Assembly: GCA_020536535.1 (NCBI GenBank)
Contig: JAHLWZ010000076.1
Coordinates: forward strand, 1 to 64,000
Origin: Pelomyxa schiedti
Taxonomy: Eukaryota > Protista > Evosea
Direction: 5' to 3'
DNA length: 64,000 nucleotides
Shown piece after piece: positions 48,330-54,957 of this stretch (the first letter of the stretch is position 1; each line of letters opens with the position of its first letter). The notes below the pieces were generated by a model. That model was not told the origin of the DNA. It was given only the letters and a program-made list of their open reading frames with translations, and did not search any database. Position numbers and translations under genes: made by a program.

Positions 48330-49926
48330 ATGCTAGGTATTCGAGTCGTTTGTTTCGTCGCAGAACGTCATGCAACTGTGAGTGACTTTTTGTTATTGTT
48401 GTCACAACTAGGCTCGTGGTACATACGTGCTTCACCACCGTCTCCTGCTGAACAAGCACCAGGAGCACAATGCACAACACCAACACACCAACGGCAACAG
48501 CAACCGCAACCACAAATACAAATGCAAATGCAAATACAACCACAACCACAACGACAATCACCTCCGCGGGAACAACAGCTAGAAAGAGTGGTTGTTCAAA
48601 ACCATGCTACGAGTTGTAGCACACAATCACAGGCCCAGGCTCCTGTCACAGGTAAAAAAAAAAAAACGGGAGAGGGGAACCAAAGAATCTCGAGTTAACT
48701 CTCACTCTTAATCAGCAGAATCTCGCGGTGACATCACTATGACAACAGGAGCGAATGATGCCACTCCTAGGCAACCACCACCTAAACGGCTGAGGTCACC
48801 ACCAGCCAATGAAACGGAAGGTACACGTGTAGATCATTCCGTGCAGGCTCCTCCTCTTCCCCCACCTTCCCTTTCTTGTGCTGCTATACTTGGGGAAAAA
48901 GTAGGTGGTAAAGGTACACCACTCCCAAACTAAAACAAAACATCTATATCTCACTATCGTATAAAGAAGCGAGCCAACAAGCCCCAGGCCCAGATTCTCA
49001 CATTGCACCAATAATCGAAAAGGCTCTTGAGCAAGCCACTTCACAATTACGTTGTCAAGTGCAGCAAAGTCTGCGTGATATAGAGGGTTTGTGGTACTTT
49101 ATTTTGTGTGTCTGTGTAAGATCAGTTGATTCTGAAACTATTATATTGCCTTGCCCCACTCGATTTCCACGGCACCCAAATGAAATTCTCCTGCCTTCAA
49201 TAATACCGTCCACTACCTAACTCACAAAACATCTTGGATTTCTTGTTGTAATTCTCGTATCACTAATGCTTTTGCAGAAGAAAATTGGTTGAGGCAGAAG
49301 ACACAAGTTCTAATCAATGAAAGCAACCCCTTCCTTCTCCCATGCAATATACAACATACTAATACAACCCAACAAGCTTATTTACAATAACACAACAGTG
49401 CATCGACCGCCCTGGCAGACGAGATGTAGTCCTAGACCTCAAAGACAGAGATATTGAGCGACTGCGTAAACGACTGAACGAAGAACGGGAAAGAAATCAA
49501 TCATGCCCGGCAAGCGAAAAACACCAGCTGGAGCAAATGCGGTCACAATTGCAGGAACAGAAGATAGCACGCGAGGCTCAACTCCTCCAGCAAGCAATAC
49601 AACGCAAGGAAGCTGAGAAAACCTATCAAGAACTCTGCGCTGCCGCGGAAAAGAAAGCCGAGGCCGTTGAAGCCGAGTCGGCACAAATGGTGCAAAAGGT
49701 GAAGCAAATGGAACGGTCAGTACAGGATACACTTGCTGCAATCGATGAAGTGAGGCAAAAGTGTGCTGCTGCAGATGAACTGAAGAGAACCACAACAAAG
49801 GAGCTCACTGAGACCCAGGCTAGAATAGATTCGCTGACAAAGCAAATTGCAGAAACACAGCAGGCAACTACCAAATTCACCGCAAAACTAGACACCATCC
49901 TGTCAGTCTTTAACAAGAACGAATAA
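48330..49926 (+). CDS. Hypothetical protein with a C-terminal coiled coil
   Basis: Q/P-rich exons and PPPKRLRSP; continuous helical final exon DIERLRKRLNEERERNQ...KLDTILSVFNKNE. Start uncertain. Confidence 0.5.
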
Positions 49927-50000
49927 AACAATAAAACAAAACATGCTAATTATTGAGCTCTCAAAAGAAAAAAAAAAATTAAAAATACGAAGGTGCGTTG

Positions 50001-53000
50001 ATGAGCAGGCGTCGGGGCCGGCAGCGACGGATCTTGGACGACGACAGTGAGGAAGAGGAGGAGATCATTGCTGAGGTGGAGATGTTGGACGACGATGACA
50101 GCGAGAGTGATAGTGATGGTGACAACGACGGCGAGGGGAGCGATGTGTCTCCAAAGAGAAAGAAGAGTCGCAGGGGCAAGAAGATTGGGAAAAAGAAGAA
50201 GCCCCCGAGTGATTCTGAGAGCAGTGATGGCAAAAGTAGCGGGGGTGACGAAGGGGGTGAAAAAAGCACTGACAGCGGCAAGGGGGACTATAAGGAAGCT
50301 GAAGAAAAGGGAAAAGAGCCGGAGAAAGCAAAAAAGAAGGAAGAGGAAGAGAAAGAAGCAGAAGAAGAGAAAGAAGACGAAGGAAAACAGAAAGAGGATG
50401 AAGAAGAGGCAGAAGAAGAGGGAACGCACCCAGCACCTGACATTGAGGATGGGTCGTCATCTCCGTCACAGGGAGGCGAGGAAGATGTAGAAACAGACAA
50501 CCAAGACGACCCCAAGAAAGAAGCAGAGTCTAGTAGTGAGGAACTACTGAGTGATGAGGAACATGTGCGGGGGAAAAGAAAAAGGAAGCAGCATGGTGTA
50601 TCTTTTTTGAGGACAGGACAGTGGAAAGATAAAAGCTACCCGCACGTCACTTTCTATAAGCAGATGAGTGTGAGAAATGAATTCCTACTGTCTCTTGGAG
50701 GTGTATCTTAGTGAATCCACTTAAATTTCCTTATTTTTTTACTCGTGGTTTTGAGACCTTAGTTTTCTATTAGATACCTGCGAACTGAAGGATAGATATC
50801 AAGAAGAGAAAACTAATTACTACGTGATCCTCAAAAGAATGCTATCGAAGACTACAATGCAGATTGACTGCATGGAATATGCTTTTCCCACCCAACTACG
50901 ATTGAAGGTGCCACAATTATATCATTCATTACTCTAATGGGGAGGTTGAATGAAATTGTTCAAACGAACCTGTAGTAGGACCCTCCGAAATTGGGATCAC
51001 AAGAATTAATTTTTTTACATAAGGAACATTCCTTTTCCTTGAATGAGTGAGTTTGTCCAATTTTTTTCTTTTTCCAAGTGTCTGACTCTTCGTAATTCAG
51101 AGTAAAAATTTTACACAAGATTACTGTTGTACCATTTACTGTTCTTGACAGTGACAACACTGATCCTAACAGTACATCACTTTTTACACGCAAATTTTAA
51201 CAAAGGAATAGCGTATTACTGCCAGTATGCAGCTGTGCCTATTGGAGACAGTCCTACATTTAAAATAATTCCTCTGGTGGCCAGTATTGACTACTTTCTG
51301 TTAATGGTACCCTGATTCAGAGCCTTCATGAAAGAGAAAGTCATGTCTTAAATCTACAAGGTCCACCAAAACAAGATTGAAACAGTAAAAGAAATTCTGC
51401 ACCAACCAAACCACGTGGATATCAACGAGCACCAGCGAGATACCCTATCTACAGCAGTACACTTTGCTGCCGAATTTGGTCACTCTGAGTTGATGGTACT
51501 TCCAACAATATTTGCGTTTGAGACCTGATTGTTGCATTACTAATTTCCTTTCAGTCTTTACTTCTTGACTCCGGTGCTTCACCCAACTCCCAGGACCGAG
51601 ATAACTCCACCCCACTACATTTTGCCTCAGTGGAAGGATTTGTTACTACAAAATCAACTAGATGTGCTGAGGTTTCCACCTATCTCAATAAAGCCAACTA
51701 AACACAAAAAAATGAAACAGATTCTCCTAGAACATGGAGCCAGGATAGATTTAAGAGATAAGTGGGATAAAACGGCCTATGATTGGGTTAAAGACAATCC
51801 AGGACATAAGTTGTTTTCACCTACTTTTCTCCCTCTAATTTCTGTCACAGTCCGATTGCTAGAGTCTTTAAGAAATTCCATCCCCGATTAATATTACCTG
51901 ATGTCTCACACTCACCCACACCACCTTTACCTTCCGAGACCACTGCAACACACTTGGCACCCGTCAAAAGACCGCCTACTGCACACAAAAAAGCCTCTGC
52001 AATGTCCGATTCCCCCGAAAGTCCAATTCCAAAGAAACCTAAAATATCTTCTCTCAAGAAACCTAAAGTATCTTGCGCCAGTAATTCCCCTCTTCCTAAC
52101 CTTATTTGGGTTCACAATGACTAAAAAGATAAACCCGTAGACAAAAAGTTCCCCAATCCCCCTCAACCAGCAGCTAAGATTTCAAAAAATGTGCCAGAGG
52201 TCAAACGTCCCCCTGGTTCAACCACAACCACCAGCAATTCTAAAACGGTTACCCCCCTCACAGCCAACTTACCAAGCACCACTAGGGCTCTGGCACCCAA
52301 GAACAAAGAAACAAAGTCAGTTGTTAAAGCGAAGCAAACTGAAACAACCTTCCCACGCAAAACTCAGGCAATAAGTAGACCCCAGCAAGCACAACCCTAT
52401 AAACAACGCCCTTCTCTAGACGAGGCTTCTCTTCCACCTGTACCTCGAAAGGCTCCTGATTTATCACTTGCTATTGGGCCCTCCATTGAATCACTCCAAG
52501 TACCACTTGTTAAGCGCCAGATCGCGCTCCATGAGCTAATGCACATGACGACTCCAACAAGATTTCAACTGCCTAGTAAATATACTATGCCATTTCGTAT
52601 GTGTGCTCAATCTCAACCAAACTTATTGTATTTGCATAAATGTAGTCCGAGACGACTACCTTAGTCTAGAAGAAGAGATAGACTCCTCCATTTCGGATCT
52701 CTGCGCATCAGGCCATCTAGAACTAGTGAAACCGGCTACAGACACATTTGTTGACTGTGACCGGGTAATGGCCAAACAGAGACAACAGTTCAAAGTGCGA
52801 GCTTGTCACTTAGAGCTAGCCAGAGCATGGTAAGACCTTTCTTGTCGGGCCATACTTACTTTACCTTCAGGCGGGTAACGAACACTGCAAATCAACAAGC
52901 ATTCAATAGTCTGGCCATATCTGAGCAACAGAGCAAGTCCTGCTTTTTCTACGGCTCTTGGGAGTCGTTGAAAGAAGTTATCACAAATGGTTTTCATCAA

Positions 53001-54060
53001 TGGTTTGGAAACCATCAGGTTACCTCAACGTCTCTTAGCTCCACCTAATTACCTTCAGATTAACATTGGTCATCTCATTGGACTATCCACCTACGCCACT
53101 AGATGCCTTCCATACCACCCTGCTCCTATGTACTGTCTTGCCTGTGAAGCCAAAATAGGAAAAATGTTAGCATTACCAAATGACTGTAAACTTTATGTAC
53201 CTTACTTTTCCCAATCAATATTCCCTATTAACTTTAGTAGTGGCTCGAACCACAAGTGCTGAAGCAAGCTGGCTATGACTCCGTTTTTCTAAGGACAGGC
53301 TCTCCATGGGCACCAATGTTTGGATTTACTCAAGCTGCGCAGGTAAAGAAATGTATTGTACACTGTGCTAACAGATACCTGGAAGGTCTATCCAAAATAT
53401 CTCTTACTCTACCGATCAGTCTATTCGCAACGTCTTAAATTCACAACAAAGTTATCCGGCACTGTACAGCACCCCATTGGTCAATTTCAAAAAGGTCTGT
53501 CACTAAAATACTTCCTCGGTAGTAATGAACCTTCTCAAGAGTGTTCTCGAATTGGAAAGCTCAAAGAGAACGACGACTTTCTATGCTTATGGGACCCAAT
53601 GCCCATATTCGATGTACACTGTAATATTGTCTGCAAACATCAAGTAAACCTCTGTGATAGCATTCCAGCTCACAAAAAGCATCAGAGGAGCTTTTTCCAA
53701 TTATCCAATGACGATGTGACCGTTGCCCTTCTTACACAGATGGATGCTTTTGCACATGAAATGGAGAAGCTGTACGTACCGTTCCATGACTTTACAAACT
53801 GACTTCATTGTTCAAGGTTGCAAACCACACGCCCTGGGCATATTTATAGGCATGGATTTCTGACAAACCCTTACGACGAGTTTGTGGCATGAAGTCTGTT
53901 GAACGCTTCTGACCTTTTCTCCAGGCAGCTTCACTGTCACATTGTTTCTATCAACAGGCCCGAGGATGTTGATCCTAATTCTTTGCTGAGGTTCAGTTAC
54001 CCTAGCTTTGTCAGCATTAGAACTTTCATCAAGAAGCTCAGAACAAAGAAATCCCACTAA
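50001..54060 (+). CDS. Acidic IDR-BAH-ankyrin-PARP-like-HIT (aprataxin-like) multidomain protein
   Basis: All junctions are phase-consistent GT-AG. BAH: FYKQMSV...SLG|DTCELK...YYVILKRM...EYAFPT...QELIFL...KITVV...YYCQY. ANK: TAVHFAAEFGH, TPLHFASVEG, ILLEHGARID. ART: RVTN, FFYGS, NGF, AGYDSV, AQ|VYPKYLLLY. HIT: LWDPMPIFDVH, HGFLTNPYDE|QLHCHIVS. Confidence 0.75.
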
Positions 54061-54143
54061 ACAACGTGCTGAGGCAACTTATTTTCCAATGTGACTGAAA
54101 AGGAGAGTACAAGACATAAAGGAGTTTTATTGCCTACTCGTAT

Positions 54144-54957
54144 TTACAAAAGCAAACAACCTCCCCCTCCCCCACTCTTTCCACTGCCCTTGGCTTTATG
54201 TGGTGTCTGCTTTCTTGGCTTCTTTGCCGCGTCGGCCTTGGCTTTGTCCGCGTCTTCTTTTGCTTTCTTTTCACCCGTCGCCTTCAACACGTTCTCAACC
54301 ATAGTTTCGAACATTGTGTCAATGTTCTCCCCAGAGACGGCCGAAGTCTACAAATGAAATGAGTTTAGGTTGTGTTGTGTATCTCGAGCTATTTGGATAC
54401 ACACCTCCCAGTAAGTAGCGTTTATGGAGGCAGCGTAGTCTTCTGCCTGCTGTCGAGTGACTGCAGGCTTCAAGTCTTTCTTGTTGCCTACAATAAAGAC
54501 CTGACTTGATGGGTCTAAGTTGAATCGCTCTATCTGCTTTTGCCACTGGGTGACACACTCAAACGAATAGTGATCCGAGAGATCGAATACAATGAAGAAC
54601 CCTTCATTGTTCGGAGTGAATAATGGTAGGTAAGCGAGCAAGTGAAACAACCTTTGCATTTCTTAAATATAGAAAGTGTTACAAGTGCAAATTTCTCTTC
54701 ACCAGCAGAATCCCAAGTCTGAAGTATTTGTTAGGACACATTTCGCCACATCACTGGTTTTTTGTTTCTCAAAAAAAAAAGTAAACCTTCACGACTACGT
54801 TGCTTTTCCCGATTTTAACGGTTTTTGCGTGGAAGCCCTCACCGTCAGGAGTAAGAGTGACGGTTGACGACGGCTTTCCGGCGATATAACACGTAACTAT
54901 AGCAGTCTTACCGGCCCCAGATTCACCAACCACCATCAGCTCCACCGGATCTGCCAT
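54144..54957 (-). CDS. Divergent Rab-like small GTPase
   Basis: GESGAGKT, WDSAGEEKF, IVFDLS, VGNKKD, E|TSA; C-terminal GGCLLL. Confidence 0.9.

Follow-up and report, generated by a model that had tools for sequence, protein, structure and literature searches.

Gene structure and transcription of Pelo_966

The window analyzed here is a 64,000-nucleotide stretch of DNA from Pelomyxa schiedti, an anaerobic amoeba; it contains at 50001-54060 the coding region of Pelo_966, comprising 19 exons, encoding 1058 aa and ending with the stop codon at 54058-54060 (this and all features described below lie on the + strand). Its product is the protein KAH3767169.1 (“hypothetical protein Pelo_966”), whose exact spliced mapping onto the window showed zero mismatches and 18 introns, all of them GT-AG and 40-73 nt in length. 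The coordinates are identical in the NCBI contig JAHLWZ010000076.1, and the public annotation of P. schiedti was produced by Augustus, PASA and EVM with transcript data (PMC8887013). The 1058-codon frame stays open over the 19 exons and would be broken, by a stop or a shift, on retention of 16 of the 18 introns. The original prediction, made from the DNA sequence, was that open reading frame fragments are joined here by short GT-AG introns, and it was confirmed by this error-free mapping; the junctions singled out as critical (about 51310-51360, 53772-53816 and 53880-53924) correspond to annotated introns at 51307-51360, 53772-53816 and 53880-53924.

One RNA-seq contig (L001), spliced and 100% identical to the window by blastn, covers 52394-54110; it starts inside the linker described below and joins the linker, the PARP-like and the HIT-like parts in one transcript. 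Eight annotated introns, from 52597 to 53924, are spliced in this contig and one, intron 12 (53019-53058), is retained, which leads to a stop at 53046. The alignment reaches 54110, where the contig continues into the Nextera adapter, giving a 3′ UTR of at least 54061-54110. L001 was the only RNA contig found; an exact look-up of the unspliced open reading frame of exon 1 for further RNA contigs returned no record. A single gene had been proposed for the locus, and for the 3′ half (from the linker to the HIT-like part) this is well supported by the splicing of L001, whereas for the entire 50001-54060 it is probable, the RNA support beginning at 52394.

The connection between the two halves depends on intron 9 (52081-52128, 48 nt, GT-AG), which lies in the linker and contains an in-frame stop at 52122; with the intron spliced out, this stop is bypassed. 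Exon 10 is open over 179 codons (52125-52661), of which about 137 precede the first in-frame ATG (Met684), and because no ATG is available over this distance the exon must connect to the exons upstream.

N-terminal region, ankyrin repeats and candidate BAH module

The first 205 residues (50001-50615) form, by composition and motif scan, an acidic and Lys-rich disordered region (E 21, K 14, D 13, S 12 and G 10%) that gave zero Pfam matches. Several basic clusters in this region resemble nuclear localization signals (KRKK at residue 52, RRGKK at 57, KKKK at 64 and KRKRK at 192), and with these clusters the protein is probably nuclear. The linker (aa 470-720; 51808-52698, including intron 9) is rich in Pro, Lys, Ser and Thr. 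The composition of both regions agrees with the acidic/Lys-rich disordered N-terminus and the Pro/Thr linker originally proposed.

About three ankyrin repeats, likewise predicted beforehand, occupy aa 352-468 (51292-51804; Pfam Ank_2, E 1.8e-13). Over aa 356-453, three Pfam families exceeded their gathering scores (given in parentheses), namely Ank_2 with 51.3 bits (27.3), Ank with 46.6 (21.1) and Ank_4 with 43.2 (22.7); the unspliced exon pieces, when searched against Pfam, gave weak Ank matches and nothing else.

The beta-rich module at aa 215-350 (50643-51288), which by eye fits the general BAH block order, had been called a BAH domain (about 50640-51290), a call that none of the tools used here supported. 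Pfam searches at E<=10 with aa 200-390, 222-345, 222-290 and 270-345 detected neither BAH (PF01426) nor any other family, PDB sequence searches with the BAH-like part, whole and in pieces, detected no BAH chain at E<=10, and a word-indexed homologue search with aa 205-350 returned only the query itself. An AlphaFold2 single-sequence model of aa 208-475 had a pLDDT of 39, with 25-35 over the BAH-like region. The pattern W[FY]YRPE[ED]T, used to collect BAH references, had 0 matches in viral contigs and 15 chance matches in prokaryote genomes. The module follows the general BAH pattern in size, in being predicted to be rich in beta strands and in how its hydrophobic, GD and YYC blocks succeed one another, and in these respects it is like the BAH readers ORC1, SHL/EBS and BAHD1; it differs from them in that the usual W-[FY]-Y-R-P block reads MEYAFP, in which the Trp is missing, and in having no HMM or PDB match. 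We lean slightly towards a BAH domain and treat the module, which resembles BAH in pattern, as a candidate.

A PARP-like domain with a degenerate active site

A PARP-like (ART) domain was located at aa 757-904 (52807-53418) by a custom PARP HMM, hhalign and BLASTP. The custom HMM (model length 190) comprised 23 genuine PARP domains, all confirmed by PF00644, and aligned aa 757-904 to model positions 41-189 with 26.4 bits, whereas none of 3000 shuffles exceeded 9.8 bits. The reference PARPs had been fished with the C-terminal strand motif, which is also the source of much of the hhalign signal: minus this motif the HMM score was 9.3 bits (5.5 for shuffles), and the hhalign probability of the region against the reference PARPs, 91.3% with the full domain (shuffles <=7.7%, rest of the protein <=0.1%), went down to 2% without the last strand. 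This strand, QVYPKYLL, lies at 53340-53406. The similarity is confined to one place in Pelo_966 and is colinear over four exon junctions, and BLASTP against one of the references (L027) gave an E of 3e-6 over 158 aa. Pfam searches at E<=10 with the whole protein and six sub-ranges, on the other hand, found no PF00644/PARP, and PDB sequence searches with the PARP-like part, whole and in pieces, found no PARP. The ART fold of the original prediction is supported by the custom profile and hhalign but finds no counterpart in the Pfam and PDB sequence searches, and we regard the support for a PARP-like domain as moderate. The mean pLDDT of an AlphaFold2 single-sequence model of aa 700-1058 (no alignment) was 32.4, which, like that of the aa 208-475 model, is too low for the model to be of use. 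Noise matches of the PARP-like and BAH-like parts in the PDB were to a photosynthetic reaction centre L chain, a RuBisCO small subunit and a designed propeller.

The position of the catalytic His is taken by Tyr791 in FFYGS (52944-52958) and that of the catalytic Glu by Met885 (53316-53318), and the Tyr of the H-Y-E triad aligns to a Gly in both the HMMER and the hhalign alignments. The His and the Gly of the HG motif are invariant in the reference PARPs (23/23). With the invariant His replaced by Tyr and the Glu by Met, we take the domain for a probable pseudo-PARP rather than a writer; an active tankyrase-like enzyme was rejected because the triad is lost.

A C-terminal HIT-like domain

The C-terminal part (aa 931-1058; 53542-54057) is weakly supported as a HIT domain, of the aprataxin/DcpS type by Pfam ranking. 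Among the Pfam families, DcpS_C ranked first over aa 937-1027 (PF11969; E 3.2e-4, 21.6 bits, gathering score 24), HIT itself (PF01230) scored 14.3 bits (E 0.067, gathering score 21.5), and in the PDB a HIT-like protein (4zgl) matched aa 931-1021 with an E of 0.007. For the predicted HIT domain, the matches from two independent libraries (Pfam and PDB) coincide on a stretch of 90 residues that contains the His motif, although they stay below the gathering scores of Pfam.

The motif, QLHCHIV (aa 1015-1021; 53878-53943), is divided by intron 18, and the triad site reads Q-L-H-C-H-I-V compared to H-x-H-x-H-x-x, i.e., QxHxH or HxHxV depending on the register. In the 4zgl alignment H1017 and H1019 are paired with the target's first and second His, whereas an aprataxin-like register would make them the second and the third; either way, the central His is retained. 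The upstream H-x-x-I-V-x-K block is preserved as well. The protein ends 37 residues past the motif with a tail without Cys, and FHA and zinc-finger domains had no Pfam match in Pelo_966. The description of the domain as “aprataxin-like” holds for the Pfam ranking, which points to the DcpS_C/aprataxin branch, but not for the missing zinc finger and FHA domain or for QLHCH in place of HxHxH. A true aprataxin orthologue was rejected because the zinc finger and the FHA domain are absent.

Relatives and comparison with known proteins

When the HIT exon was compared with 1.84 billion representatives by phmmer, only the gene's own transcript product came up, and word-indexed homologue searches with aa 715-1058 and with a 419-aa frame containing the PARP-like region retrieved only the query. 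Zero relatives were found in a related-locus search of metagenome and viral contigs, no NCBIfam profile matched Pelo_966, and a literature search for the domain combination yielded no relevant paper. The combination of ankyrin repeats, PARP-like and HIT domains is found nowhere else in the collections and literature searched, in line with the earlier statement that no known protein combines the proposed domains (the BAH domain among them being itself unsupported). That these three domains reside in one gene is, in our view, very likely.

The best pairwise matches of the PARP-like domain were to metagenomic mono-ARTs of the PARP14/15 and kinase-PARP types (L021, L068 and L027; 21-24% identical over 126-158 aa, with E values from 3e-6 to 8e-5 within the set of 23 sequences), which have in common with it the strand ...DSV...Q-[AV]-Y-P-x-Y-L but, unlike the Pelo_966 domain, have all retained the His of HG[ST]. 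Tankyrases (ANK - SAM - PARP) also carry ankyrin repeats N-terminal to a PARP-type domain, and tankyrase-like sequences are among the reference PARPs matched by Pelo_966. Tankyrases have five ankyrin repeat clusters, whereas Pelo_966 has about three repeats, no SAM match, a lost H-Y-E triad and an added HIT domain, and its domains are set apart by a 250-residue disordered linker. As in the aprataxin/DcpS branch (PF11969), an H-x-x-I-V-x-K block and an LHCHIVS motif are found in Pelo_966 where they are expected; it differs in the triad, which, by register, has Gln for the first His or Val for the third, in its sub-threshold score, and in the absence of the C2H2 zinc finger, the FHA domain and the DcpS N-terminal domain.

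[quoted passage not shown] Like TASOR, ZAP (PARP13) and plant RCD1, Pelo_966 appears to carry a PARP fold with a degenerate NAD+ site inside a long, partly disordered regulatory protein, but with ankyrin repeats and a HIT domain as partners and without a Pfam DUF3715 or PARP match; the likeness to TASOR would be one of fold, and the fold of the Pelo_966 domain is deduced from profile similarity.

Possible function of Pelo_966

From N- to C-terminus, the protein would consist of a disordered acidic/basic region, a beta-rich module, three ankyrin repeats, a linker, a pseudo-PARP and a HIT fold. Judged from these features, Pelo_966 probably encodes a lineage-specific, probably nuclear scaffold with a possibly active HIT enzyme. 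The ankyrin repeats and the possible BAH module may dock the protein on protein or chromatin partners, the dead PARP domain may play a binding or structural part similar to that in TASOR, ZAP and RCD1, and a catalytic HIT domain, should it be one, would hydrolyse a nucleoside-5′-monophosphate adduct on a tethered substrate. We give about an even chance to this architecture together with its reading as a scaffold with a HIT enzyme in which the PARP domain is not a writer.

The gene could also be a fast-evolving or decaying orphan in which all enzymatic modules, including HIT, are dead, so that a pure scaffold or a protein of little function would be left. This would agree with the zero relatives in the searched collections, with signatures that are degenerate throughout (PARP His and Glu lost, Gln or Val in the HIT triad, BAH unrecognizable) and with the frame-breaking intron retained in the only transcript contig; we consider it unlikely in view of the frame kept open over all exons, the transcription and mostly complete splicing of the gene, and the preserved central HIT His and H-x-x-I-V-x-K block. 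Rather improbable is a locus with two products, i.e., a BAH-like/ankyrin protein that stops at 52122 when intron 9 is kept, and a separate PARP-like/HIT protein started at Met684 or Met686, whose RNA would be either the same one or the product of an internal promoter. Although RNA evidence starts only at 52394, a stop is in frame within intron 9 and in-frame Met codons precede the PARP-like domain, the long stretch of exon 10 open before its first Met would be unlikely if it were untranslated, intron 9 is canonical and of typical length, and the public annotation, itself based on evidence, models one gene.

The function originally envisaged was that of a chromatin-tethered pair, perhaps for DNA repair or transposon silencing: a nucleotide modification would be bound or written by the ART domain and erased by an aprataxin-like HIT domain. 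The order of the domains would allow such a pair, NLS-like clusters are present, and the best-ranking Pfam family for the HIT domain is the one to which aprataxin also belongs; with the PARP His and Glu both absent, no aprataxin zinc finger (the tail being without Cys) or FHA domain, and an unsupported BAH domain, we think it very improbable. We attach the same low probability to a further reading, namely a chromatin-docked HIT enzyme for which the adjacent dead PARP fold would provide the pocket that holds NAD+-derived or adenylate adducts, and which would recognize ADP-ribose or AMP marks on DNA ends or chromatin proteins and cleave them. Such a protein would unite reader and eraser in a single chain, a type not known from any organism.

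As an orphan gene with degenerate signatures and no orthologues in the searched collections to show conservation, Pelo_966 is at present of value as a candidate for biochemistry rather than as an established new system. The fusion of a predicted pseudo-PARP to a putative HIT nucleotide hydrolase and ankyrin repeats is not known to have been reported before. To our knowledge, pseudo-PARPs are few, and each known case (TASOR, ZAP and RCD1) proved to be a regulatory hub; if the HIT domain of Pelo_966 is active, the fusion would suggest that PARP-fold recognition is directly connected with the removal of nucleotide adducts.

Gene model and transcript of Pelo_966

Used as a phmmer query, the HIT-side exon returned a single protein, P0001, which derives from the Logan RNA-seq contig L001 (SRR23919876, 1386 nt) and whose 90% cluster includes P0002 (KAH3767169.1, "hypothetical protein Pelo_966 [Pelomyxa schiedti]", 1058 aa). 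The position of P0002 on JAHLWZ010000076.1 (50001-54060) is identical to the window coordinates, and the precomputed Pfam matches in its public record comprise ankyrin families only. The gene models of P. schiedti were predicted by Augustus and refined by PASA and EVM with single-cell transcriptomes (PMC8887013). Exact spliced mapping of P0002 to the window gave 19 exons, separated by 18 GT-AG introns that are each 40-73 nt long, and the key junctions of the original prediction (51307-51360, 53772-53816 and 53880-53924) were all correct. Retention of 16 of the 18 introns would lead to a stop or frameshift (the exceptions are introns 15 and 16). Exon 10 is open for 179 codons (52125-52661) and its first in-frame ATG is Met684, so it cannot start the protein and must join upstream; intron 9 (52081-52128) is a 48-nt GT-AG intron whose splicing takes out the stop at 52122 and preserves the phase with exon 9.

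L001, which carries a Nextera adapter at its end, matches the window with 100% identity over 52394-54110, and the annotated introns 10, 11 and 13-18 are exactly absent from it. The linker, the PARP-like and HIT-like parts and the 3'UTR are thus on one spliced RNA, which bears out this portion of the proposed single transcript, exons 1-9 lying outside L001. Pelo_966 is very probably a single gene throughout. Intron 12 (53019-53058, 40 nt; about 536-575 in L001) was kept in this sole RNA contig found, where it breaks the frame with a stop at 53046; this is either an intermediate awaiting splicing or an isoform whose intron retention is regulated. The PARP alignments described below run unbroken over four exon junctions, including that of intron 12, which supports the spliced form.

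A PARP-like domain with a degenerate active site

An ART/PARP-like fold had been predicted downstream of the linker. Pfam gave no PF00644 match at E<=10 in this region, whole or in pieces, and comparison with PDB sequences returned noise only. Because there were no homologues from which to build a family profile, genuine PARP domains were gathered as references: the back-translated C-terminal PARP strand Q-[AV]-Y-P-E-Y-L-I recovered 120 metagenome stretches, 37 of them with long upstream frames, and 23 non-redundant domains were retained, all of which match PF00644 (best E 2e-27). One contig with a long frame and a PARP14-like catalytic end (L038:617-6061(-), human-gut metagenome), probably assembled from DNA of the human host, was excluded from all analyses.

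An HMM of the 23 domains, run with filters off against the whole of P0002, produced one hit in the protein, in which aa 757-904 align to positions 41-189 of the 190-position model (21.9 bits); against aa 700-905 alone it scored 26.4 bits, whereas the highest of 3000 shuffled sequences reached 9.8. As the fishing motif had been picked for its likeness to QVYPKYLL in the query, it was cut from both model and query; the score was then 9.3 bits (nominal p 5e-5), with FHGT placed on FYGS, and none of 3000 shuffled sequences exceeded 5.5. In hhalign, aa 720-910 reached 91.3% against the 23 domains (E 9.5e-7, 115 columns), compared with at most 7.7% for 300 shuffles and at most 0.1% for five other parts of P0002; removal of the last strand from the query only lowered this to 2.2%, so much of the hhalign signal resides in that strand. 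Pairwise BLASTP found 21-24% identity over 126-158 aa with several references (best 3e-6). The fold call, although missed by the Pfam and PDB sequence searches, is supported by the HMM, hhalign and BLASTP, and a PARP/ART fold is, judged from sequence, quite probable.

None of the 23 references departs from the His and Gly of the HG[ST] motif; in Pelo_966 the His position is occupied by Tyr791 (FFYGS), the catalytic Glu position (SEYVVY in tankyrase-like references) by Met885, and the triad Tyr faces Gly in the HMMER and hhalign alignments alike. By the criteria applied to ZAP, RCD1 and TASOR (PMC7532188), the domain would be a pseudo-PARP, i.e., a PARP fold with a degenerate NAD+ site, and productive NAD+ binding appears unlikely.

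In pairwise comparison, the Pelomyxa pseudo-PARP scores best (E 3e-6) against an open frame of 1579 residues (L027:311-5047(-)) from a groundwater metagenome contig of 20.5 kb; in this frame Pfam sees a C-terminal PARP only. Another metagenome contig (L021:405-1817(-)) combines a protein kinase domain (Pkinase 1e-31) with a PARP catalytic domain at the C-terminus (PARP 2e-22), and its PARP end is common to several near-identical contigs (L017, L019 and L074).

The C-terminal HIT-like domain

The top Pfam family at the C-terminus of P0002 was DcpS_C (PF11969; E 3.2e-4; 21.6 bits, the cut-off being 24), a family to which aprataxin also belongs, followed over the same span (aa 937-1027) by PF01230 HIT (E 0.067). 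Independently of Pfam, phmmer against PDB sequences matched aa 931-1021 to the HIT-like protein HP_0404 (4zgl, E 0.007), aligning the DVHCNIVCK block on KVHALVIPK and LHCH on HLH. In the histidine motif, Q-L-H-C-H-I-V, the register decides whether Gln replaces the first His or Val the third; both registers have His at the central nucleophile position. A HIT fold is likely, and the Pfam ranking would place it on the aprataxin/DcpS-like branch. The sequence of P0002 downstream of the motif is free of Cys and hence lacks the zinc finger of aprataxin, and Pfam detects no FHA domain. The predicted aprataxin-like HIT domain is thus probable as a fold, with its Pfam match below the cut-off, whereas P0002 is no aprataxin orthologue.

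Ankyrin repeats and the BAH proposal

Pfam placed Ank_2, Ank and Ank_4 at aa 356-453 far above cut-offs, in keeping with the three or so repeats expected. Within the third repeat, the end of exon 7 adds 12 residues after VEGF (in aa 427-440); the annotated junction of intron 7 (51672-51720) is outside the RNA-supported part, and 51642 could also serve as a donor.

The BAH domain proposed upstream found no support: its region matched no Pfam family at E<=10 and no PDB sequence, had no relatives in the homologue search, and was modelled by AlphaFold (built without homologues) with low-confidence strands only (pLDDT 25-35). Read by eye, the order of the blocks F-Y...LGD.C.L, YYVILKRM, IDCMEYAFP, QELIFL...KITVV and TYYCQY resembles the general BAH pattern, and on this resemblance we lean modestly towards a BAH domain.

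Putative function and genomic surroundings

Against 1.84 billion representatives, phmmer with the HIT part recovered only Pelo_966's own products, as did word-indexed homologue searches; metagenome and viral contigs, when scanned, yielded no relatives. No paper joining these domains was found in a full-text literature search. What is new in Pelo_966 is the partners of a pseudo-PARP protein; the sequence itself was already deposited as a hypothetical protein.

The N-terminus of P0002 is rich in Glu (21%), Lys (14%) and Asp (13%) with clusters KRKK, KKKK and KRKRK, a composition that suggests a nuclear, histone-chaperone-like tail. The ankyrin repeats, perhaps a BAH domain, and the pseudo-PARP as a binding module would form a docking scaffold, on which the HIT domain would be the one possibly active enzyme; a scaffold carrying a putative HIT enzyme is the most economical reading of Pelo_966. 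Its substrate, if the domain is active, may be AMP-DNA, cap-like dinucleotides, AMP-lysine or ADP-ribose. A reader/eraser function, as originally envisaged, is possible and speculative, and the "writer" half of that idea is unlikely.

Genes are tightly packed around Pelo_966 (49537-50000 and 54061-54146). The stop of an upstream same-strand gene of 129 aa, which has no Pfam match, lies 75 nt before the Pelo_966 ATG, and the spacer contains AATAAA-like signals. Downstream, the 3'UTR of Pelo_966 extends to at least 54110, and a gene for a Ras/Arf-like GTPase, which converges on it, has its end at 54144, leaving 83 nt to the Pelo_966 stop.
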